A stretch of 63,495 bases of DNA, counting the filler, from Ministeria vibrans ATCC 50519 (taxonomy: Eukaryota; Protista; Filasterea): assembly GCA_943704425.1 (NCBI GenBank). It is 4 parts of 4 records of this genome, joined end to end, with 100 filler letters (N's around TTAATTAATTAA, not from the genome) between each part and the next. Parts side by side here need not be neighbours in the genome. Positions count along the whole stretch, not along the records: positions 23,239 to 54,033 come from CALSCP010000043.1; 3 more parts are not named here. The stretch is one strand, 5' to 3'. Below, in pieces: positions 2,629-52,773 of the stretch. Under the pieces are notes generated by a model. The model had not been told where the DNA came from and did not search any database. It was given only the letters and a program-made list of their open reading frames with translations. How positions within the stretch are numbered: position 1 is the first letter of the stretch; each line of letters opens with the position of its first letter. The position numbers and the translations under genes were made by a program.

Positions 2629-4093
2629 ACAATCTCTACCTGGACTTCAACGGGGTGATTCATCTGTGCACGCACGGCACGGCGGCCAATGAAGGCGCAA
2701 CCGAAGACGAGATGATCTCCACCATCTTTGCGTATCTGGAGCGCATCATTGCGTAAGTGAACATGGCCTGTGCGTGTGTGTGTGTGTGTGTGTGTGCTCA
2801 TGCCCAGTGCACCAATAGGATTGTGGCGCCCCAGAGCGTCCTCTTTATTGCTGTGGACGGTGTTGCGCCGCGCGCCAAGATGAACCAGCAGCGTCAGCGT
2901 CGTCTGCGCTCAGCGCTCGAGGCTCAGAAGGCTCAGTCGTTTGTGGCGCTTTCAGGTGGTCTCCTGGCCATGCCCAAGAAAGAGTAGGATGCCACCAGTG
3001 TTACTACGACGACTCATACGCAGTACGACGTCTAATTTTTTGAACTCTCTCTCTCTCTCTCTCCAGGGCGTCGCCGGTGTTTGACAGCAACTGCATTACG
3101 CCCGGAACGGACTTTATGGTGCGACTGAACGAGGCGCTGACGGCGTTTGTGGCGCAGAAAATGGACACAGACGTGGCATGGCGCGACCTCAATGTGATTG
3201 TGTCGGGTCACCAGACGCCGGGCGAGGGCGAGCACAAAATCATGGACTATGTGCGACGCGAGCGAGCCCAGCCTGGGTACAACCCCAACACGCGCCACTG
3301 CCTGTACGGTCTCGACGCTGATCTTATTATGCTGGCACTTGCAACGCACGAACCTCACTTTGCACTGTTGCGCGAGGCCATCAACTTCCGGATGAACCGC
3401 GACCGAGCTCTCAACTCGACCGTCGACGCACGTCCCGAGGTCATTCTGGGCCAGTGTGCCGACGACTTCCAACTGCTGCACATTGGGCTGCTGCGCGAAT
3501 ACCTCGATATGGACATGCGCTCGTCGATCGAGTACCGTCGCGATGACCCTGAGCTGCTGGCGTCCGCCGCACGTCTCGAGTTTGACCTTGAGCGTACCCT
3601 CAACGACTTTGTATTCCTCAGCTTTCTCATTGGCAACGACTTCCTGCCTATGCTGCCCACGACGGACATTGACGAAGGCGGCCTCCACAATGCCTTTACT
3701 ATCTACCGCACTGTGCGCGAGTCGTCCGGCGACTACCTCGTCGACACGACCGACAAGCGTGTCAACATTGCTTTTATGCACCGGCTCCTGTCGACGCTCG
3801 CCGACCAGGAAGAAGAGGTCGTGTGCAAGCAGCTGCGCATCCCCATGGCGTCCAAGGTGCTCAAGAAGGACGGATCGGAAGCAGAAGCAAAGGACACCAC
3901 AGAGGAGAAGGTGGCGGCGGGCGATGCCGACGAAGAGCTTCTCGACGAGGGCGACATTGACGCGATTGCGGCACTCGCCACCAAGAAGGTCAAGGCCCCC
4001 AAAAAGAGCGCCGCTCTCATGTTCACTCCCTCTTCGCTTGTGCCACCCAAGACACAAGACTTGCTTCTCAAAAATAACAAGAAGGCAGCAGCT

Positions 4094-4132
<39 letters not shown>

Positions 4133-6847
4133 GCCACCGCTACCACAGCACCGGTCGCAACAACCGCCGCTGCACCTGCAGCGGCAGCGGAAGAGAACAA
4201 GACGGTGTCGACGACAACGCAGGAGACGGCAGGAGAAGTGGAGGAAGTTGCCGCTGTGATCGACTACAAGACGGCGTACTACGAGAAGAAACGCATGTCG
4301 CACGATCCGCGCGAGGTGTGCGCTGCCTACACGGCCGGACTCCAGTGGGTGTTTGAGTACTACTTTTTTGGACTGCCTTCGTGGAGCTGGTACTTTCCGT
4401 TTCATTTTGCACCCCTGCCGTCGGACCTGCGTGACGCCTTTGCCGACTGTTATCGCGCACTGCCGCAGTGGGCGCCCTCGGAGCCTCTCAAGCCTTTTCA
4501 GCAGCTGCTTGCCGTGCTGCCCGCAGCCAGCTCGGCGCTGCTGCCGACCCCTCTGGCTGCACTCATGACTGAAGCAACGTCACCTTTGGCTGCTGGCTAC
4601 TCGCTCGAGTACGAGACGGTGCCTGACCATCGTGGGCGTGAGTGGAAGGACGTTGCACTCATTCCTTTCTTTGACATTGCTCAACTCGTCTCCGTCTATG
4701 ACAAGACGGTCGCGAGCCATCCACTGAGCGACGCGCACGCGCATCTCAACCAATCGCAGAGTGCCCGGCTCTTCCAACGCGATCCGTCGGGCGCCACACA
4801 CGAGTTTGCCACGCCGCGCGACTCCAACCTGTTTGCAGCCTATGGCGCGACGATTGTCTCGCACTGCATTGCCTGCGACCTCGCCAACTCGACGTACGAC
4901 GCGCCCCGACCCGACTATGTGCACGAACTGCTGCCCGACTGCTGGACGGGTCTGGTGCCACCGCCGCCCGCCTTCCCCACAACCAAGTCGATTGCGGCCC
5001 AGCCCGAAATGAGCGAAGAGGGCACTATTCGCATTTTTCATCGACGACCCAGTCGCAATACGTCGCTGTTGCTCTCCATGACGGGCACAGAGGAGGAGAC
5101 GCGCAAGGCTGCGATCGCTGCTCTCACCCGTGACCAGTCAGCCGGCGACAAGGTGCTTGAACGCGACATTCGCGGCGCCATACTGGGCATTAACCAGGCC
5201 AAGGGGGCGCAAGTGGCGCACGCACTGCTTGGCGGCACCTGCGTGAGCGACTACCCCTTTCACTGCGAGTCGAGTGTCGTCGCGGTGCATCTCGAGCAGA
5301 GCGTCTGGCGCATCAACCGCGGTGGACAGGTGACCAAGGCACCGCGCGACGTGGACGAGTGGACGCGCATTTCGCGCGTGGTCACGGAACGTGCCTTGCA
5401 CCAGCACGGCATACGCATTGACCCACCCCACGTCATTGTCGAAGTACGCCCTATCATGGGTCTGTGCGCCTTTCCGAACGGTGGCACTGAGCAGGTGTTT
5501 GAGCAGGAGAGCACGTACTGTGCGGCGCAGCTGCTGACGCTACAGGCGCCCCGCCCTATCCCGCAGTTGCTGGCGCGCGAGCCGCCGGCGTTGGCCAAGC
5601 GATTGCCGATCAACTCGGTTGCCGTGTACCTGGGCGACGACCAGTATGGTGTGCGCGCGACCATTCGCTCGTTCAATGCGTCGCGTGGCACCTTTGGTGT
5701 GACACTGCATGTGCCGGCGAACGTGACGTCGACCAGCTCGACGATGATGCAATACTCGCGCGGTGACTTCCAATCGGCGCAGAGCGCCGCGTCAACGCTC
5801 TCGATGAACCCCCTGGCCATGTCGCGTCTGTTTAGTGCGGTGACGGTGCGTCTGCCGTCGGACGAGCCTGAAGGCGCCGACATTATTGTCGAAGTGGGAC
5901 TGCAGCTCAAGTACTCGCGACGCCAACTGTACGTACCCGGCTATTGCCGTCGTGTGTCTACGCGCAACATGCACGGCGAGGCGCGCACCACATGGGAGTA
6001 CAGCAACGACGCGCTGCTTATGTTGCAGCAGCTGCGCACTGCCTTCCCCGACTTTATCCGCGCCATCGAAGCGAGCCCCGACACCGACACGTACGACTAC
6101 ACCGCTTTGTTGGCGCCTGTGGTTGCCGCCGAGTCAACGGAAGGCGAATCGGCCGCCACTGATGCTGATGCGGCTGCTGTCGTGCCGGAAGACGAGGCGG
6201 AGACAGCCACGGCCGAAATGCAAAAGGCGGCTCGTGTGCGTGTCGAGGAGATTCTTGCCTTTTTGCGCAACCTTCCGTCGGCACGTCTGCCGCTGGTGCC
6301 GTGCGATGCCAAGGCGTTGGGTGCGACGACCGTGCACGATTTGGAGGAGCAGGCAAAGGAGCGTGTCGCGTGTGGCGTGACAAGCATTGAGCGAGTGGGT
6401 GTGCTGCCCAACGAGCTGCTGGCGCCTGTGTCGGTGCCATTGTCGGCAGGCGCCGGTCAGACACGTCAGTCGGTGCGTCTGGGCTCGCGTGTGCTCAACG
6501 CATGTGCGACGGGACCTGTTGTCTTTGGCGAGCGTGGTGTGGTGGTGGCGATGCGCGGAAATGTCGCGGAGGTGCTGTGGGACACGCCGCTGCTTGGAGG
6601 GCACAACCTGCTGGGCCGCTGTCGGACGATCCGCGCGTCGACGACGCCAGTGTCGCATCTGCTCAGTCTGGACACGCCTGAGTTTGCCGTGGCGATCCCT
6701 CGCAACCGCCGGACAGGTGTGGAGGGTGCGAGTGGCAGCGACGACGGCGCCGCGTCCAACAAGAAGAAGAAGAAGGGCAAGGCGAAGGGCGGAGACAAGA
6801 AGAAGTCTGTGAACATGTTTGAGCTGTTGGGCGATGGTGACGAGTAG
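2629..6847 (+). CDS. XRN1: 5'-3' exoribonuclease 1 (first exon not found)
   Basis: Motifs DNLYLDFNGVIH, AVDGVAPRAKMNQQRQRR, FDSNCITPGTDFM, GEGEHKIMDY, HCLYGLDADLIMLAL, GNDFLP and PFQQLLAVLP. The long C-terminal region is typical of XRN1 rather than XRN2. Confidence 0.92.
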
Positions 6848-27712: not shown

Positions 27713-30700
27713 ATGTCCTCACTACAGGAACGCATTCAAGAGGCTCGGACGTCCCATTCCTTGAACCTGAGGAAGATGGGGCTCAGCTCTCTTCCAGACG
27801 AAATTCTTGTTCTTGCTGACTCTCTACAGGAATTGCTGTTGACAGACAACCCGCTTGGGATGATTCCCGACTGGATTGGACAGTTCAAGAAGCTCAAGGT
27901 ATGGAAAGGGGAGAGAAAGGCCAGGATTTCTCACGAGTCAGCTCGGTTTTTTTTTTCTGTACGAAGCTTCTCGACGTTGGGAATTGCAAGCTCAAGACGC
28001 TCCCGGCAGCCATTTTATGTTTGCGATGGCACCTGGGGGAGATTACTTACAGAAGTAATGAGGGATTCTCGCCGTCTCTCGACAATCTCTGTGCAAGTAA
28101 GAGGAGAACAATTTCAGTCGATGAGTACTAAAACGAAAGGTTTGTCTGTAGAAGGTTTGAGATAGATAGGATGATTGCTTCAATTGATTCTAACTCCTTA
28201 TCTTGCGCTTCTGGGCGTGGCAATGTTGGGCTGCTCAGTTTGTAAGAAGGCATCTTTTTGGACGATTTTGCTAACACTCGCAACTTTGCAGTTTGTAAGA
28301 TGTCAAGAATTGGTGTATATCTGACCCTATTTTCGCTCGATTCGCTGCTCTGTGCTATTTGGTTTAGGGTGTAAGTTTGAAGAATAGATCGAAATGGATG
28401 GTGACTGATTTGGACTGTGATTTGCACTCTTCTTTGCATTGTTTTAGCTCGTAAGTTTGAAAAATAGATCGAAATGGATGGTGACTGACTTGGACTGTGA
28501 TTTGTACTGTTCTTTGCATTGTTTTAGCTGGTAAGTTTGAAGAATAGATCGAAATGGATGGTGACTGATTTGGACTGTGATTTGTACTGTTCTTTGCATT
28601 GTTTTAGCTGGTAAGTTTGAAGAATAGATCGAAATGGATGGTGACTGATTTGGACTGTGATTTGGACTGTTTTTACATTGTTTTAGGGTGTAAGTTTGAA
28701 GAATAGATCGAAATGGATGGTGACTGATTTGGACTGTGATTTGTACTGTTCTTTGTATTGTTTTAGGGTGTAAGTTTGAAGACTAGATCGAAATGGATGG
28801 TGACTGATTTGGACTGTGATTTGGACTCTTCTTTGCATTGTTTTAGCTCGTAAGTTTGAAAAATAAATCGAAATGGATGGTGACTGATTTGGACTGTGAT
28901 TTGGACTCCTTCTTTGCATTGTTTTAGGGGGTAAGTTTGAAGAATAGATCGAAATGGATGGTGACTGATTTGGACTGTGATTTGGACTCCTTCTTTGCAT
29001 TGTTTCAGACGGTAAGTTTGAAGAATAGATCGAAATGGATGGTGACTGATTTGGACTGTGATTTGGACTGTTTTTACATTGTTTTAGGGTGTAAGTTTGA
29101 AGAATAGATCGAAATGGATGGTGACTGATTTGGACTGTGATTTGTACTGTTCTTTGTATTGTTTTAGGGTGTAAGTTTGAAGACTAGATCGAAATGGATG
29201 GTGACTGATTTGGACTGTGATTTGCACTCTTCTTTGCATTGTTTTAGACGGTAAGTTTGAAGAATAGATCGAAATGGATGGTGACTGATTTGGACTGTGA
29301 TTTGCACTCTTCTTTGCATTGTTTTAGACGGTAAGTTTGAAGGATATATCGAAATGGATGGTGACTGATTTGGACTGTGATTTGTACTGTTCTTTGCATT
29401 GTTTTAGACGGTAAGTTTGAAGAATAGATCGAAATGGATGGTGACTGATTTGGACTGTGATTTGGACTCTTCTTTGCATTGATTTAGACGGTAAATTTGA
29501 AGAATAGATTGAAATGGATGGTAACTGATTTGGACTGTGATTTGGACTCTTTCTTGCATTGTTTTAGGGTGTAAGTTTGAAGACTAGATCGAAATGGATG
29601 GTGACTGATTTGAACTGTGATTTTGCATTGATTTAGACGGTAAATTTGAAGAATAGATCGAAATGGATGGTGACTGATTTGGACTGTGATTTGGACTCTT
29701 CTTTGCATTGTTTTAGGGAGTAAGTTTGAAGAATAGATGGAAATGGATGGTGACTGATTTGGACTGTGATTTGGACTGTTCTTTGCATTGTTTTAGCTGG
29801 TAAGTTTGAAGAATAGATCGAAATGGATGGTGACTGATTTGGACTGTGATTTGGACTGTTCTTTGCATTGTTTTAGCTCGTAAGTCTGAAGAATAGATCG
29901 AAATGGATGGTGACTGATTTGGACTGTGATTTGTACTGTTCTTTGCATTGTTTTAATTGTTTTAGGGTGTAAGTTTGAAGAATAGATCGAAATGGATGGT
30001 GACTGATTTGGACTGTGATTTGGACTCCTTCTTTGCATTGTTTCAGACGGTAAGTTTGAAGAATAGATCGAGATGGATGGTGACTGACTTGGACTGTGAT
30101 TTGTACTGTTCTTTGCATTGTTTTAGGCGGTAAGTTTGAAGAATAGATCGAAATGGATGGTGACTGATTTGGACTGTGATTTGTACTGTTCGGTGCATTA
30201 TTTTAGCTGGTAAGTTTGAAGAATAGATCGAAATGGATGGTGACTGATTTGGACTGTGATTTGTACTGTTCTTTGCATTGTTTTAGTTGGTAAGTTTGAA
30301 GAATAGATCGAAATGGATGGTGACTGATTTGGACTGTGATTTGTACTGTTCTTTGCATTGTTTTAGTTGGTAAGTTTGAAGAATAGATCGAAATGGATGG
30401 TGACTGATTTGGACTGTGATTTGCACTCTTCTTTGCATTGTTTTAGCTGGTAAGTTTGAAGAATAGATCGAAATGGATGGTGACTGATTTGGACTGTGAT
30501 TTGTACTGTTCTTTGCATTGTTTTAGCTCGTAAGTTTGAAAAATAGATCGAAATGGATGGTGACTGATTTGGACTGTGATTTGCACTCTTCTTTGCATTG
30601 TTTTAGCCGGTAAGTTTGAAGAATAGATCGAAATGGATGGTGACTGATTTGGACTGTGATTTGTACTGTTCGTTGTATTGTTTTAGCTGGTAAGTTTGAA

Positions 30701-32220
30701 GAATAGATCGAAATGGATGGTGACTGATTTGGACTGTGATTTGTACTCTTCTTTGCATTGTTTTAGCCGGTAAGTTTGAAGAATAGATCGAAATGGATGG
30801 TGACTGATTTGGACTGTGATTTGTACTGTTCGTTGTATTGTTTTAGGGTGTAAGTTTGAAGAATAGATCGAAATGGATGGTGACTGATTTGGACTGTGAT
30901 TTGGACTCTTCTTTGCATTGTTTTAGCTCGTAAGTTTGAAAAATAAATCGAAATGGATGGTGACTGATTTGGACTGTGATTTGTACTGTTCTTTGCATTG
31001 TTTTAGCTCGTAAGTTTGAAGAATAGATCGAAATGGATGGTGACTGATTTGGACTGTGATTTGCACTCTTCTTTGCATTGTTTTAGCTCGTAAGTTTGAA
31101 GAATAGATCGAAATGGATGGTGACTGATTTGGACTGTGATTTGTACTGTTCTTTGCATTGTTTTAGCTGGTAAGTTTGAAGAATAGATCGAAATGGATGG
31201 TGACTGATTTGGAGTGTGATTTGTACTGTTCTTTGCATTGTTTTAGTTGGTAAGTTTGAAGAATAGATCGAAATGGATGGTGACTGATTTGGACTGTGAT
31301 TTGTACTGTTCTTTGCATTGAATTAGATGGTAAGTTTGAAGAATATATCGAAATGGATGGTGACTGATTTGGACTGTGATTTGCACTCTTCTTTGCATTG
31401 TTTTAGTTGGTAAGTTTGAAGAATAGATCGAAATGTATGGTGACTGATTTGGACTGTGATTTGTACTGTTCTTTGCATTGAATTAGATGGTAAGTTTGAA
31501 GAATATATCGAAATGGATGGTGACTGATTTGTACTGTGTTGTACACTCTTCTTGGTGCTCTTTCCATTGTCTTGTGTTAGTTGGTAAGAAATGAGAATAT
31601 TGAGAATTTGTTCGTGACTGATTATAATTTTAGTTGGTAATTGCGTTTTTACATCAAGCCTGTGACTCCCCTGTACCTCGCAGGCCGTGCGCAATGGAAG
31701 TGGGACACACGGGCGTTCTTTCAGCTTCTCGCGGAAGGAGTTCGACAGGAACAACAGCGACTTGAGCAACAGCGACTGGAGCAACATCGATTGGAGCAAC
31801 AGCGATTGGAGCAACAGCGATTGGAGGAAAGAGTGCTTCGTCTCGTTGAGGTACCACGCCATTCCATTAACTCTTCCAAAAATCATCTGTTCTAGGAGAA
31901 CGAAGCCGCGTTGAGTCGGCGACTTCAATTAGAGAGGGTAAGTTTTACTTTTCATTTTCAGTGCGCCCCTTATTGTATTATTTTTCAGGAATTGAACGAC
32001 GCTCAAAAGCTTCTCGAGGTACCTCATCATAGAATCCCTGCCATGTTGTGTTTGAAAATCACATTCCATTTGCACAGTCGGAGCGCCAGGCCAACCATAC
32101 TCACGCAAATCTACTGGAGAACGAGCCACCGCTGGTGACGCTCAGTCGCGCAGCCCATCGACTCGATCAGCTCGTTATGTCCGCCACGGCCGACAGCCTC
32201 GTCAGTGCCGATGTTGCGTC
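27713..32220 (+). CDS. LRR protein with a 45-microexon variable loop and a coiled coil (3' truncated at an N gap)
   Basis: Exons 27713-27898 and 27967-28096 encode LRRs (LNLRKMGLSSLPDEI, LQELLLTDNPLGMIPDWIG, LKLLDVGNCKLKTLPAAI). Then come 45 three-nt exons at 28152-31636, followed by exons 31684-31850, 31896-31937, 31989-32018 and 32078->32220. All introns are GT-AG and the frame is consistent throughout. Confidence 0.82.
28368..31530 (+). repeat. Tandem array of about 40 units of ~80 bp, each a 77-nt GT-AG intron plus a variable 3-nt microexon
   Basis: Unit GTAAGTTTGAAGAATAGATCGAAATGGATGGTGACTGATTTGGACTGTGATTTGTACTGTTCTTTGCATTGTTTTAG + NNN. It contains a donor, a branch-like TGACTGAT, a pyrimidine tract and an acceptor. 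Confidence 0.95.
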
Positions 32221-32226
32221 NNNNNN

Positions 32227-35200
32227 TGCTCCTGCTGCTGCTGCTCCTGCTGCTGCTGTTGTTGTTGTTGCTTACGCACTGACTCGAATGCATCGGGATC
32301 AGACGCACTTGCAGCGGAGGCGGGGCGGGATGTAGTCGGCGCAACAGCAACGGCCACGGGAATGGCATAGACCTGAGTGCCATCGGCAAGCGCCAGATGC
32401 GGCTTGACGCCCTGCGCCTTCATCATAGACGCAGCCATGCTGAGCGCCGACTCACGCTGCGAATCCAGCGACTGTTGTAGCGTTGGCTCGGTGCACTTGT
32501 CAAAAAGATGCCCACCCATGCCACAGTTGCAGCAAAAAGGCTGCCATTCGACATCGTCCACAATGGACAAGTCAATGGACTTGACTGAGGAGTTGTCGTC
32601 GTCGTCTTCGGTTGAGCCGTCAAAGCTCTGGGCGGGTGCCACACGTGAGCCAGCGATCGAGTCTGTCTGCGACGACGACGATCCTGTGCGCGTGAGACGC
32701 TCCGTTCCCAACGACGAACGTCCCATGGCGGGCACTGCGTGGTCGGCGACACTCGAGTCAGGCAACTGCTTCGTCGAACTGTGGTTGTCCTTGGCCTTCT
32801 CAGCCGCGCGCTTTCGACGCTCTCGACGACGCGACGACACAGATCGATTCGAAAGACTGCTCGCCGAGCTCGCGTCGCTGTAGCAACCGGGCGATGGAGG
32901 AGGCAAATCGAATCTACCGTAGGCCACTTCGTCGTCGTTAGCAAAGGCAATGGGCGAAAAGACGCTGGAGGACGAGTCGTTGGGAAGCAGTGCCAATGTG
33001 GAGCGAGCGGGACGTGTTGCGGAACCATTCGAGGGCTGCTCTTGCTGCGAGAGTGGGGTAGACGTGGGAGTGACGGTGGCGGACATGCGTGTCTTCTGTT
33101 GTTGTGGCTGAAGAGTCGACGTCGAGGAAGTGTCCATCTGACCGACGCGCGTGCATATCTTGTCGTCGCCAGTGGGTGTGGAAGTGGCCAACGCCGAAGA
33201 CCCCTCAGCAGAAGTGAGAGGTGATGCCGGAGTGGCATCGGCATCCGTGCTGCTCGAAGGAGGAGCACCAGACGAGAGTGTCTCTACTGTCACGCCCTGA
33301 GACGTTGATGCGCTCACGTTGGGACTCTCCGTTGTCGACTTGTCATTTTGAAGCGTGCTAGTGGCTGTGGTGGTGGTAGCACTCTGGGGGAGCCTCGCCG
33401 CATCGGGAGGTGACAAGACCGCTTCAGCAGTATCCATGCCGGACGCTGCCGCATGCTTGTTCTTCTTCTTCTTTTTCGAACGCTTCTTTCCACCACCTGC
33501 GCCTGACTCTGCTGTGCCACTGGACAAGATGGAGACGGATTCGGGTGCACTGGTTCGACTGCCACTGGCACTTGCTTCGCCCGTGTTGGCATCCGACTCT
33601 GGTGCGGAAACAGCAGCAGGAGGAGTAGAATGCGAAAGGTTTGTAGACCCGGGTGATGTAGCGTTGACGCCAGTCGAGGCAGGCGTGAGTGTCGTTGTGG
33701 ATGCGGTTGCGGGAGCAGCAGAAGCAGCAGTAGCAGCAGTACTAGGAATGGCCGTCGACGTAGTAGTAATAGTAGTAGTAGCAGTGGCGGCAGGAGTCGT
33801 AGAGGCAGTAGTCGAAGTCGTCGCAGCAGACGATTGATTTGCCGCACCTGTGCTACTGGTACTGACGAGCGGAAATGAGCCACGTCGTTGGTTCCAACGA
33901 CGCGTGTAGAGTTCTTCATCGCTGTCACGGTCGGCAGGCGCACGCGACGCAATGTGATTGGCAACAACAAAGACCGTGTCGTCGATGGGCGTGCGAGCGT
34001 CGCCAAGATCGTCGGCGACGGCGGGAAACGAAGAGCCTGAGAGACGGCCGGCGCCGTTGCCGGATATGCGGTAGCGGTAGGGGCGTTTGGAGAGACGACG
34101 CGAGCCGGGCAAGACTGCAAGAGGTGCGGCGCCGCCAACAGAGAGCGATTCGTCGTCGGCATCCTCGCTCTCATCGCCACCGGCTCCACTGTTATTCGCA
34201 GATGTATTAGCCTGAGCAGCCGTAGCAGCGGAAGTAGTTGTGGTAGTGGCGGTCACTGTCACAGGATTGCTACTCAAAACGTTGGGAGTCGTTGAGCTTG
34301 ATACTGTGTCCGAGCTGGCCGCGTCGTCACTAATCTTTTCGGTTGCGTTGCTCTCGTCGAAATCCTCCGTCACATCATCCATACCCGCTTCGTTGGGGAG
34401 AGGAAAAGAGGAGAGAGAGGTGGAAGGTTCGAGTAGGGACCTTCGATAGAGGAGCGCACCGGCAAGCGTGGCAATGGTGAGAGCAAGGCAAACAATGAAG
34501 CGAGGTGAGAGGAACACGTCTGCGGCAATGCTGGAGCGAATGGACGCCTGGAAGGCCATAAGAGGCACTAAAAGACCATTGAGGCGTTCGGCTTGGCCAG
34601 GTGTAATACGCGAGTGGGGGTGGCGCAAGAATCGACCGTACGACTCGATGGTGGGAAGAAGAGCGGCGGCACGATCGACATGCTCGCTTGGCAGCAACGC
34701 ATCGCCCTCGTCGCGCGCATCAACAAGGCGCCGGATCCACACGGCAAGGCGTTCAGTGTTGCGCAGGAGTGAACGAGCGCGTGTGACGCGACTATTTCTC
34801 ACGAGAGCCGTCAAGTCGTCGACGACAGCACCCACCACAGAGGCGCCATTGACAGAGTCGACTGTGACGGCCGCAACGGCGTCCATGACCGCGTACAACG
34901 AATCAATCACCGAGTGACTAGCGCGCACAGCCAGACGACCAAGGGCCATGGACGAGTCATAAGCAAAGGCAACAAGCGAGCCGACTACCGACTCGAGTTG
35001 GTCCTCCGTCAGATTCTCAGCCTCCAGTGCCAGATTCGCCACCATTTCGTGGGGGCGGTGGCTTTCGCCCTCAATTGACACCACCACCTTGTCGACTCTA
35101 TCGCAAAGAATATCAATTAGAATAACAAAAAATTTATAATAATAATATTACTATTAATAAAATTACGTATTTAAGAATAATAACAACACGAAAGTAATAA

Positions 35201-35243
<43 letters not shown>

Positions 35244-36341
35244 TAATTATAATAATAATAATAATAATAAAATAATAAGAACAAAAATAAGAATAAAAAT
35301 AATAATACTAAAATAAAAAATAATAATAATAATAAAATAATAAGAACAATAATAAGAATAAAAAAATAATAATAATTATCATCATTAATAAGAAGAATAT
35401 GATTATTAATCATTCCGAGAAGAAAATAATTATTCTAACAATAATTTCAAAAGCAAAACAACGACAAACGAAAAACGTATCGTCATCTCATCTCACCTGT
35501 AAAAGTAGATGATGCGGTCGACGCCGTTACGCACAACCTTGTAGACAAAGCAATCGTGACCGTAGACGGGTGCGTTGCGCAAGTAGGTAAGTTTGAAGGA
35601 GTCGTCGTTTTGGGGGGGATGCAGTTCGCGATCCGTGAGAAGTGTGTTGGTGAGTTTGATGCCGACCGAGGCAGCAATGTCGCCGTCGTAGAAGCACCGC
35701 ACGTCAAGCAAGTCAAAGTTGACACGGCGACGATAGCCGGACGAAGTGATATGACTGCGTTCGTGTGCGCTCCAACGAGACTTGGTGCAACGCAGGCAAC
35801 CAAGATCGAGCGAACACGCCTGCTCGAGAATGCTAATGTTGCTGGCGCCACCAAAAGCGGCAATGAAGGTGTTGGGGACGTCGGCGGCGTTCCTGTTCAC
35901 CAGCATGCCGCCGTCGTCAATGTCGTCGTCGTCGTCGTCGTCGTCGTGGCTGTCGAGGGCGGGCGCGTAACGAGCAGAATCGGGAATGGTTGGTTTTGGA
36001 TTGGCGCTGGTGGCATTTTCGAGGGACGTTGGGAGGAATCGCGTTGCTACAACCAAGTTGTCGTGGTCAATGTCGGTATAGGCGAGCTCGCGAGAGCCTA
36101 TGGGCAGCGAGGCGGCGCTGAGCAACATGGACGCTCTCTGTGGATGGCGAAAAGGCGACCCAGCGACGCTATTTGGAGGGGACAGCATGCGCGGACGCAA
36201 TGCAAGGAGCGCCAGCGATGCGACAGCGCTCAGAAGAATGCCCCACAGACATTTTGAGCGCCAGGAGCGTTGAATTTTCGCTTGCGGTTTACGACGCTGA
36301 ATGGGCCGTCGCGGCGTCGCAGGCAGCGATCCCTTGGCCAT
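32227..36341 (-). CDS. Hypothetical membrane protein with low-complexity regions and a CCHC zinc knuckle (3' truncated)
   Basis: An AT-rich intron (about 35497-35098) joins the 35493..36470 and 32202..35087 ORFs. There are two hydrophobic segments and the knuckle CCNCGMGGHLFDKC. Confidence 0.6.
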
Positions 36342-41029: not shown

Positions 41030-44074
<3,045 letters not shown>

Positions 44075-49572: not shown

Positions 49573-49707
49573 TAAAAATATGTGTGTGTGTGTGTGTTCT
49601 CTATAAAATAGAAGAAGAATACAGGAAAAATCCGACTTGTTCATTAATTTTGATTTTTGATTTTTGATCCAAACTTTTTTATTTTCCTTTTTGTTGTTTG
49701 GTTGGCA

Positions 49708-51652
49708 ATGGACCCCTCGACACCATTTGAGATCAACGACTTTACGAGCGCCTCCGACTGGGAGCGGGCGTCGTTTGCATTTGAGGAAGCTTTGCGCAAA
49801 TGGATGTTGGAAAGTTCATCGTCCACGTCGTCCGCACCACAGACAGCGAACGCGCCGCCAACTGTGGCGGCGGCGGGTGCCGCGTCAAGTGTCCACATCG
49901 TCGGTGCGACCGGCGTCCTCGCAGAGCAAACAGCAATGCTGCAAGAGGCGACGGCGACCATCAGTCTGAACGGCGTCGACTATGTCGCGTCGATCTGGTC
50001 GACGCGACCAGGCGCCGCACGCCCGCCCGTCATCGACAAGGGCCTGCGAGTGCTGCTGCCCCCCTCGTCGCATGCGCCGTCGACCCACTCGTCGGTTCCC
50101 GCCTCGCCCATGTCTCTGTCAACATCCGTGCCCTTTGGCGACGCGTCGGGCGCAGTGCACCCTGCTGCGCTCGTCGACGAGTCGCTCTCGCCCGCCGCCC
50201 TCGACCTGCTTGACCAGTGTGACTTTGTGCCTGGCTCGCATCCGCTCCAGCGATGGTACGGCGTCAAACAGTTTGTTGTGTGCGAACCGCGCGACGACAA
50301 GCGGCGACCGACGCTCGACGACGCCACGGCACTTCTGGGCGCTATGTGTGTCGCTGCGAGCAACATTGGTTGTTCGCTGCCCATGTTTGCTCAGATGCAC
50401 GATCGGAGTTTGCGCCTGTGGTTGGGTCGGTCGAATAATGCGCGGTGCGACATGGTGTTTGAGTCTACCTCACTGCGCTCTCCGCCACCGCGCACGCTCA
50501 GTCATCTCAGTGGCATGCTGGACTTGTTTCGCTCTCGTATGGGCACTCCCGTCGACTGTTACACTGCCAACGACGCGACTGAAGACGTCGGCGCTTCTGA
50601 AGCGGCGCGTGTCGCGGTCGCTGCTCGATTCACCTTTCAGTTAGCGTCCTGGCTCGACACGGACTGGCGCGACGACGATGTGGGTGCGAGCCAGCAATCG
50701 CCGCTCCGACAGGCCCTCGATGCGCCTATTGGACCTCGTAAGGACCCCGTTGAGGCACTCCATCTTGCCACAACCTGGCCGAATTTCCCCGAGGACGCGG
50801 TGCTCGACAACGCTGTCTACAGCGAACTCGATCCGTCGCTCGCGCCCGTTTGGACCCTTCGCGCCATTTTCACGCCGCCCATGGCGGTACACAGCCGTCT
50901 GACAGTGTCTCTCCAACGCTTTGCGCAGTTGTGCACGTGTGCCGACTCAATGAGAAGACTGATGGAGACGGCCACGACCACCGTCGCCACCGAGGGAGCC
51001 ACTGCTGCCGGAGGCACAGGAGCAGGCACAGCCGCGGCTGTGTCAGGGGGTGGGACCACTGCATCAAGCACGTCGTTGCTGTCGTCGGGGGCGCGCAGTG
51101 AGGATGCGAGCGAGGCGCTGGCTCGACTCACGCATGGCAGTGGCGGCAGTGGTCTGTTTCCGCACTACTTTGACCGGTCGGTGCAGCGAGTGCGCCATCT
51201 GGTGACAGCCGGGATGGACCGTGTTGTGAGCATTGTGGACGAGTCTTTGCCGTCGCTGGAATATGTGGACTCGCTGGTTGGTGACATATTCGAGTATGGG
51301 CGTGAAGGGGCGCAAGTGGTGTCGGCCGTGGCAGTGCCCCGCGTCAAGGGAGCGCCACTGGGATCGACCACGTACGCTCTGGGAGCCGCACTTCTTATGG
51401 TGAACCACCGACGGGGTGGCGTGCGTGCAGTTGCGTTGGTATGGACGGCATATGTACGTGCGTTGCGGCGCTGTTGGGAGTCGCTCGTGCGTGTGCCGGG
51501 CAGTGCCAGTGTTGTCAACATGGATCATTCTATTGTGCAGCAGAAGCTGGAGATGCTTAATGCATGCATTGACAGCCAAGGTGCACGTGAAAAACTTAAG
51601 CGACAGCAGCGTGAAAGTGCACGACGCCAACAGGAAGACGACGACGATGATT

Positions 51653-51683
<31 letters not shown>

Positions 51684-52773
51684 GGAGGAGTTTTTTGATG
51701 CGGAAGAAGATCCCAACACGGTCGAGAGCGAGCCCACTGTTGCAGCGGCGGGCGGTGGCATGGTTCCCGAAGGGGTTGTACACAACCATGCGAGTCTGTG
51801 TTTACTGGCAGGAGATCAGACGACGCCGTTGCGTGTGCCGCGCGTGCAGGAAGCGCCTCCGTTGACCGAGGACCAGATGGAGGCTCAGTTGGCTGCGTAT
51901 GCGGCTATGGGCACGACGGGCGAAGCGGCAGCGCTGCGGTCGCGTTTGCAGGCGGCGTCGCTGCTATCTGACATGGAGGCGTTCAAAGCCGCCAATCCGC
52001 TTGGGGTGTTTGCCGATTTTGTGCGTTGGCACTCGCCACGAGACTGGCTGGTGGACCAAGGGCAGGTGAGCGAGCGCATGAGATCGGCCGATGGGCTCTG
52101 GCAGGATGTGTGGGCACGGGCCCACGCCGTTCCCGTGCACCGCCAACGGCCGTTGTTCGACGCCACACGCGAGGCCGAGAAGGCGCTGCACTACCTGGAG
52201 ACCATTGAGCCGGCTGAGTTGGTGCGGCAGCTTCTGCCGAGTGTCGGGGTGTACGCTCTGCAACGGCTGGGCGCGACAGACGCAGCCGCACAGACACGGT
52301 GTGCGGCCCAATCGGTGCAGACGCTTGCCGACGCTCTTGATGGCCTGGGCTATGCGACAGGCATGGGTCAGGAGATGGGGCCTGCGTCCCTTGTGGTGGT
52401 CGAGCCGTTTGAACGGCGTACACTGCCTGCGCTCGCGCACGCTGAGTATGCGGTGCACCTGGTGCGTAGTCTGCGTCACAAGCTTGTGGATGCCGAGAGC
52501 CTGGTGGAGGCATTGCCGTGCGGCGACGAGGTGGCGGTACTCAGCGAACACGACCGCACCACCATAACCGAGATGTTTCGAGCGGGTGAGCCACTGAAGG
52601 AGGGCAGGCGTTCGCGTCTGCACGAACCGGACGCGCGCGAGTACCTCTTGCGTGCTGTCGTGTCGCGCCCATCATCTCGATCGCGACCGTGTCCCCAGCG
52701 AATGTATGTACACATTGGTGACGAGGAGTTTCGTGTCGCGAGTGCTCACTCTCGTGATCCAATTGTAAAATGA
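49708..52773 (+). CDS. RAB3GAP1: Rab3 GTPase-activating protein, catalytic subunit
   Basis: FEINDFTSASDWE, QKLEMLNACI, LLSDMEAFKAANP...DFVRWHSPRDW, LFDATREAEKALHYL and PQRMY. Confidence 0.92.

Follow-up and report, generated by a model that had tools for sequence, protein, structure and literature searches.

A tandem array of predicted one-codon exons

The stretch of DNA analyzed here, 63,495 nucleotides from Ministeria vibrans ATCC 50519 (hereafter the window, along whose full length all coordinates are counted), contains a leucine-rich repeat (LRR) gene that harbors a long series of candidate 3-nt exons, and we read this region, with a probability of roughly 0.6, as a gene-internal tandem array of genuine exons of one codon each. 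The 45 candidates extend from 28152 to 31636, between the second exon of the gene and the next exon of ordinary size, and every one of them is found in the context YAG-NNN-GT (Table 1). The setting is a eukaryotic genome of 29.7 Mb, assembled in 2860 contigs, with short GT..AG introns. The intron of the repeated unit has a size that is normal for this genome, so that its recognition would probably proceed by intron definition. We conclude that the one-codon exons are, as predicted from sequence, real and mostly constitutively spliced, and we infer from the evidence laid out below that their triplets are actually spliced and translated.

According to this reading, each 80-bp unit would consist of a short intron, complete in itself, and three bases of exon, and intron definition would remove the intron of every unit, leaving one codon's worth of sequence per unit. 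Because exon 2 ends in phase 1, each codon would straddle two triplets, taking its first base from the end of one and its other two from the start of the next. Mostly complete inclusion would give rise to a peptide of 45 residues and low complexity, with many aromatic residues, G, R and D and few L and K, framed by K/R-V-F/Y-W and, in most paralogs, by V-V-D/G-R-A-x-W-K; such a peptide would serve as a variable hinge or recognition loop. The near-identical introns would foster frequent duplication, deletion and unequal exchange of units, always in frame, and the length and sequence of the peptide would therefore change much faster than the flanking exons. Frequent unequal exchange between near-identical introns would also account for the arrays of close paralogs, which have introns in common and differ in the order of their triplets.

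Variation within the unit is concentrated in the triplets

Tandem Repeats Finder describes the array as an 80-bp unit present in 39.6 copies with 92% match. When the 40 units are aligned, the three triplet columns have an entropy of 1.5-1.9 bits, and nearly all of the 77 intron columns are at or near 0. The same contrast holds in every array analyzed (8 of 8), in which none of the other columns of the alignment (85-102 in all) varies as much as the three triplet columns. In the 8 arrays parsed in detail, the exon measures 3 nt in every unit, and insertions and deletions in the introns make the unit spacing range from 68 to 95 bp. The intron of each unit opens with a GTAAGT donor and closes with a T-rich tract and a TAG acceptor; a CTGAT branch-like motif precedes this acceptor by about 39 nt. 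The interior triplets are never NAG, a sequence that would create a competing acceptor.

A small-RNA or structured-RNA role for the conserved intron was considered and ruled out, since the intron unit shows no significant RNA fold (z-score 0.55) and has no Rfam match. In 35 of the 40 units (28368-31489), a TGC (UGC) motif precedes the acceptor AG by about 12 nt; in animals, UGC motifs near the acceptor are a mark of microexons dependent on SRRM4-type factors.

Signs that the triplets are read as codons

Comparison across paralogs, designated here by the contig of the same genome on which they are found (C43 being the array of the window itself), indicates that the ends of the array follow a coding pattern. 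The leader triplets, whose positions are conserved in all paralogs, are AAG or GAG, TTT or TCT, one of TTT, TCT, ATT and ACT, and GGN, which read in phase 1 always give K/R-V-F/Y-W. The T/C differences among them (TTT/TCT, ATT/ACT) fall at third codon positions and are synonymous in phase 1 only; taken as codons of their own, the leader triplets would give F/S or I/T changes. This leader is kept even in C1237, the exon 1 of which is 61% identical and the introns of which look unrelated. At the other end, the trailing triplets and the next exon encode V-V-D/G-R-A-x-W-K in most paralogs and R-V-D-H-A-R-W-K in C915. Paralogs with a readable 3' end of the array mostly finish in TTG TTG (V-V), C915 finishing in GGG TTG (R-V) and the last unit of C173 carrying CGG.

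Stop codons were counted in the seven arrays of known phase, which comprise 196 triplets. None of the 189 adjacent phase-1 junctions creates a stop; shuffling the order of the triplets yields a mean of 3.8 stops (P = 0.008). It is G, not T, that precedes triplets beginning with AA, AG or GA, so that glutamate is enriched in place of stops (P = 0.001). At the junctions that would be formed by skipping, stops occur at about 1.5%, against an expectation of 2.1% from composition. The avoidance of stops at adjacent but not at skip junctions favors full inclusion over a combinatorial skipping maintained by selection.

An array family across the genome

The same architecture is present at no fewer than 15 loci, on independently assembled contigs. 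The unit measures 80 bp in C43, C915, C73 and C2647, 88-89 bp in C1260, C312, C1600 and C1049, 85-88 bp in C1237 (with the unrelated-looking intron) and 91-92 bp in C2596, C1977 and C2736. Exon 1 has 11 homologs in the genome, with identities of 61-92%, and every exon-1 paralog that can be traced past exon 2 enters either an array or an assembly gap. Between loci, the array introns are 94-96.5% identical, whereas the unique flanks are only 84-88% identical. Paired AG-NNN-GTAAG sites spaced 40-100 nt apart number 198 (129 + 69), versus 5 (4 + 1) in controls, and among the 169 matches to the paired pattern that were listed, all but one lie inside these arrays. The confinement of these pairs to the arrays marks the feature as specific to the family, rather than as a genome-wide property or a dispersed introner. 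Unit copies that appear to be solitary turn out to be the ends of arrays truncated by a gap or by the end of a contig.

The 7.2-kb contig C73 carries two family genes head to tail: gene A comprises an array, a Roc-like region and a caspase, and gene B starts with exons 1 and 2 followed by its own 88-bp array. At least some of the paralogs are therefore clustered in tandem. A metagenome scaffold (ENA ERZ23497376, 685 bp) holds an ortholog, 95.9% identical, of the 5' part of the C1049 paralog and includes the leader exon; in this scaffold, the first leader exon, AAG, has a GC rather than a GT donor. A metagenome scan with the invariant 34-nt intron word returned zero matches.

A separate array with a 92-bp unit, unrelated to LRR exons, is located at C2596:33142-33803 (3511-4400 of the extracted piece). 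Its first exon consists of ATG and 14 hydrophobic, signal-peptide-like residues and ends in phase 0, and its triplets, read as whole codons, alternate between R and W (CGT TGG CGC TGG CGC ... GGA GGG). This array could be the gene for a small secreted cationic-aromatic peptide.

Host proteins

In the predicted proteins, a four-repeat LRR head precedes the peptide and a conserved W-containing helix follows it. In C915, the nearest paralog (93% identical downstream), the gene runs on into a coiled coil and then a protein kinase, with no Roc detected. Paralogs C73, C1260, C312, C1049 and C173 continue into a P-loop GTPase that looks Roc-COR-like, as judged by a P-loop-like motif, a Pfam Roc match that falls below the cut-off (E 0.0017) and an Atlas feature score of 0.96 to Roc-COR clusters. 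In C73 and C1049 a caspase domain comes after the GTPase. Sequence searches of PDB with the paralog bodies gave zero matches. At about 75.1 kb of C2736, on the minus strand, the array is mostly lost in a 1.1-kb N gap, which is followed by the W-helix exon, ankyrin repeats and a RING finger, a layout indicating that the array module is joined to an E3-ligase-like body as well. The LRR head, the array and the helix are thus predicted to form a module carried on different bodies: coiled coil and kinase, Roc-COR-like and caspase and, probably, ankyrin-RING.

The encoded peptide

A first-pass annotation had described the product of these exons as a zoned peptide resembling the third complementarity-determining region (CDR3) of antibodies, situated in a putative LRR C-terminal cap and perhaps convergent with the variable lymphocyte receptors (VLRs) of lampreys. 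Parts of this description stand. The peptide and flanks that it gave are matched letter for letter by the local phase-1 translation of exon 2, the 45 triplets and the downstream exon. The zoned composition is likewise found, with 17 of the first 26 residues being W, Y, D, G or R and 15 of the last 19 being A, P or V, none of these 19 being W, Y or R. The intron sub-variants share the same zones, which points to local duplication of units as the source of the zoning of the peptide. Comparison of paralogs confirms that the segment directly adjoins the last LRR and is the hypervariable part of a conserved module. The helix proposed to follow the segment is predicted by AlphaFold2 as a single helix spanning residues 8-54 of the downstream exon, with a predicted local distance difference test (pLDDT) score of 91.6.

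The cap and the likeness to VLRs did not hold up. The N..F.P.L pattern taken for a cap motif is the LxxIxYxxN...F.P.L register of an ordinary fourth LRR; in an alignment of exon 2 from 8 paralogs this register is invariant, including N31, F34 and P36. Pfam detects LRR_1 only, with LRRCT and LRRNT absent even at E up to 10. No signal-peptide character is seen at the N-terminus, which is hydrophilic by inspection (a weak test, made by eye), and the protein accordingly looks cytosolic, unlike VLRs. The CDR3-like composition, for its part, is obtained with any order of the same triplets. The pooled composition of the peptides is 12% G, 12% V, 10% W, 10% A and 9% R, with W, Y and F together making up 21% and L and K being rare. 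In 48% of the triplets the final base is G, which is preferred at the end of an exon ahead of a donor; it gives rise to GNN codons, those for G, A, V, D and E. The resemblance to CDR3 is thus mostly mechanical, stemming from a small triplet vocabulary.

Alternative explanations

The triplets might be real exons that act as a combinatorial generator of diversity, their main role being a regulated or stochastic skipping through which one gene would produce a very large number of isoforms that differ in a ligand-binding loop where the LRRs end, in the manner of VLRs or CDR3. It is the case that every triplet is neutral to the reading frame and about 98% of skip junctions are free of stops, that conserved hydrophobic stems frame the peptide next to the LRR, and that the host bodies (Roc-COR, caspase, kinase) are immune- or death-like. 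We nevertheless consider such a generator unlikely: stops are avoided at adjacent junctions only, an LRRCT cap, a signal peptide and a Cys framework are all absent, and the triplet vocabulary explains the composition. Combinatorial splicing is possible yet unsupported, and the chance rate of stops at skip junctions gives no hint of selection acting on skipping as such. The opposite possibility, that no triplet reaches the mRNA and that 28097-31683 is a repetitive long intron of 3.6 kb, an intronic minisatellite with ends that resemble splice sites by accident, removed directly or recursively, also seems improbable to us. Such an intron leaves unexplained why the bases between the splice sites are the most variable columns in all 8 arrays, why their 3-nt spacing is constant despite intron insertions and deletions, why the leader and trailer are conserved, with a synonymous pattern, in paralogs with diverged introns, and why stops are avoided at adjacent junctions. 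A neutral minisatellite would be expected to spread its variation over the whole unit and to show no codon pattern, and the variation sits instead in the triplets in 8 of 8 arrays. Compatible with a single intron are the fact that a direct join of exon 2 and the downstream exon keeps the frame as well (A + GC = Ser), the mutual hindrance expected of splice sites 3 nt apart, and the likelihood that gene predictors would call the stretch one intron.

The near identity of the introns across loci, the runs of identical triplets, which could mimic target-site duplications, and the many arrays that abut gaps might also suggest self-propagating copies of a mobile introner-like element, or a mis-assembled repeat, without any gene-specific function. 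This explanation is highly improbable, given that no copies are found other than in arrays, all at one position in the genes of a single superfamily, that the architecture recurs on all the independently assembled contigs counted above and that the 96%-identical metagenome scaffold has the leader exon; the introner idea was rejected because unit copies are not dispersed singly in unrelated genes. 

Several observations weigh against the reading of the array as genuine, mostly constitutive one-codon exons. Splice sites separated by 3 nt would have to be recognized simultaneously, for which, sterically, there is to our knowledge no precedent on such a scale. The donor of the first leader exon is weak (GTTTGA), and in a fragment on C2854 the AG and GT of one unit are separated by 5 nt (3790-3800 of the extracted piece). 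The C312 array has a TGA at an adjacent GAT|GAT junction, and its upstream LRR exons are absent; this array and the 5-nt unit of C2854 are probably pseudogenes or assembly errors. A search of a library of 1.84 billion proteins with exon 1 as query recovered two family members only, both of them genomic read-through open reading frames (ORFs), one located on the 685-bp metagenome scaffold. Tandem units are not independent, and the statistics given above hence overstate replication. The order and number of units in the 3.2-kb repeat depend on the assembly and may be misstated, and many arrays end in assembly gaps or at contig ends, which indicates that the arrays break assembly.

Comparison with known systems

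The nearest known kind is the family of micro-exon genes (MEGs) of schistosomes, which contain tandem frame-neutral micro-exons of 3-81 bp separated by long unrelated introns of up to 5 kb and encode secreted products (PMC10526429). Alternative splicing is also documented for genes of the MEG type. As in MEGs, much of the coding sequence here would reside in tandem micro-exons between normal exons, the 45 triplets being multiples of 3, and the products would be variable and of low complexity. Unlike in MEGs, the exons are exactly 3 nt long and the introns, instead of being long and unrelated, are tandem repeats of 65-91 nt that are about 95% identical; codons would be split between neighboring exons, and the proteins, in which no signal peptide is seen, look cytosolic and multidomain rather than secreted.

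The VLRs of lampreys, with the insert in their LRRCT, and the CDR-H3 loop of antibodies have a hypervariable segment, rich in aromatic residues, Gly and Asp, within a conserved framing. The predicted peptide is similar in having such a segment next to an LRR, framed by conserved residues. It differs in that there is no LRRCT or LRRNT cap, signal peptide or sign of somatic assembly, in that its variability is found between germline paralogs, and in that its composition follows the triplet vocabulary. Several paralogs are also reminiscent of ROCO proteins (LRR-Roc-COR, LRRK type), with an N-terminal LRR followed by a Roc-COR-like GTPase and the array at the site of the LRR-Roc linker. These paralogs nonetheless have only about 4 LRRs, a Roc below the Pfam threshold and a caspase or kinase as effector, and the gene type found in the window combines a coiled coil with a kinase, without a detected Roc.

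As in the ratchet points of recursive splicing, acceptor and donor are placed almost back to back, and stepwise removal of the introns is plausible. A ratchet point leaves no exon, whereas in the arrays parsed here three bases stand between AG and GT, the 5-nt unit of the C2854 fragment aside; their constancy, together with the lack of interior NAG triplets, sets these sites apart from zero-length ratchet sites. Isolated 3-nt microexons are known to be spliced, for instance in RPS24 (PMC12207440). The known cases are solitary, unlike the run of at least 40 successive ones in a tandem repeat considered here, and no description of tandem arrays of 3-nt exons was found in the literature searched.

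Gene layout and neighboring features

The coordinates of the gene are collected in Table 1. The LRR_1 match in exon 1 has a Pfam E of 0.0013. The downstream exon is 87% identical to its counterpart in C915 and holds a 15-nt tandem repeat at 31743-31826 (Tandem Repeats Finder).

Table 1. Features of the LRR gene and its candidate one-codon exons, in window coordinates.
Feature	Position	Strand	Description
Exon 1	27713..27898	+	ATG start, hydrophilic N-terminus, LRR repeats 1-2; open translation up to GT donor
Intron 1	27899..27966	+	68 nt, GT..AG; size in keeping with the other introns of the gene (45-59 nt)
Exon 2	27967..28096	+	LRR repeats 3-4; ends in phase 1, with one extra A
3 leader one-codon exons (candidate)	28152..28294	+	AAG 28152-28154, TTT 28239-28241, TTT 28292-28294; introns unique, non-repeat
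40 one-codon exons in tandem array (candidate)	28368..31489	+	80-bp period; 77-nt GTAAGT...TTTTAG intron after each (variants of 65-91 nt)
2 trailing one-codon exons (candidate)	31581..31636	+	TTG 31581-31583, TTG 31634-31636; introns unique
Downstream exon	31684..31850	+	Completes the split codon (needs 1 preceding base); conserved R-A-x-W-K motif, then long helix with five QQRLE repeats
Three further exons	31896-31937, 31989-32018, 32078-32221	+	Coiled-coil region continues; 96-100% identical to C915
Assembly gap	32222..32227	.	Six N; removes 3' part of host gene; the C915 reading frame runs on beyond the equivalent point

Immediately past the six-N gap, an unrelated ORF of 961 codons occupies the minus strand (32202-35087), and this arrangement suggests that a scaffold join was made at the gap. 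Elsewhere in the window are an (ATA)n AT-rich tract of about 260 bp (35136-35399), a (TC)93 microsatellite (42955-43141) and an intron-free ORF for a Rab3 GTPase-activating protein catalytic subunit (49657-52773; Pfam E 8e-48).

Implications

Should complementary DNA (cDNA) confirm inclusion, the 45 consecutive exons, with every codon spread across two of them, would exceed by far every run of minimal exons known to date. If real, the array would put intron-definition splicing, and the minimum spacing between splice sites, to a stringent test in nature, and it would represent a new route to an evolvable coding region, in which the repeat-mediated gain, loss and exchange of single codons never breaks the frame. 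For annotation it carries a warning: the exons will escape standard gene callers and short-read aligners, and assemblies are broken at the arrays.

The domains found in the family (LRR, Roc-COR, caspase, kinase and ankyrin-RING) resemble the machinery of innate immunity and cell death, and the family thus bears on the origin of recognition diversity before animals. It is conceivable, as a tentative and rather doubtful proposal, that the arrays act as a codon-cassette diversification system in immunity-like LRR receptors with caspase, kinase or E3 bodies. If that were true, the homogenized introns would be substrates for in-frame recombination, and possibly for alternative splicing, and populations or even single cells of a unicellular eukaryote would make many variants of a recognition peptide.

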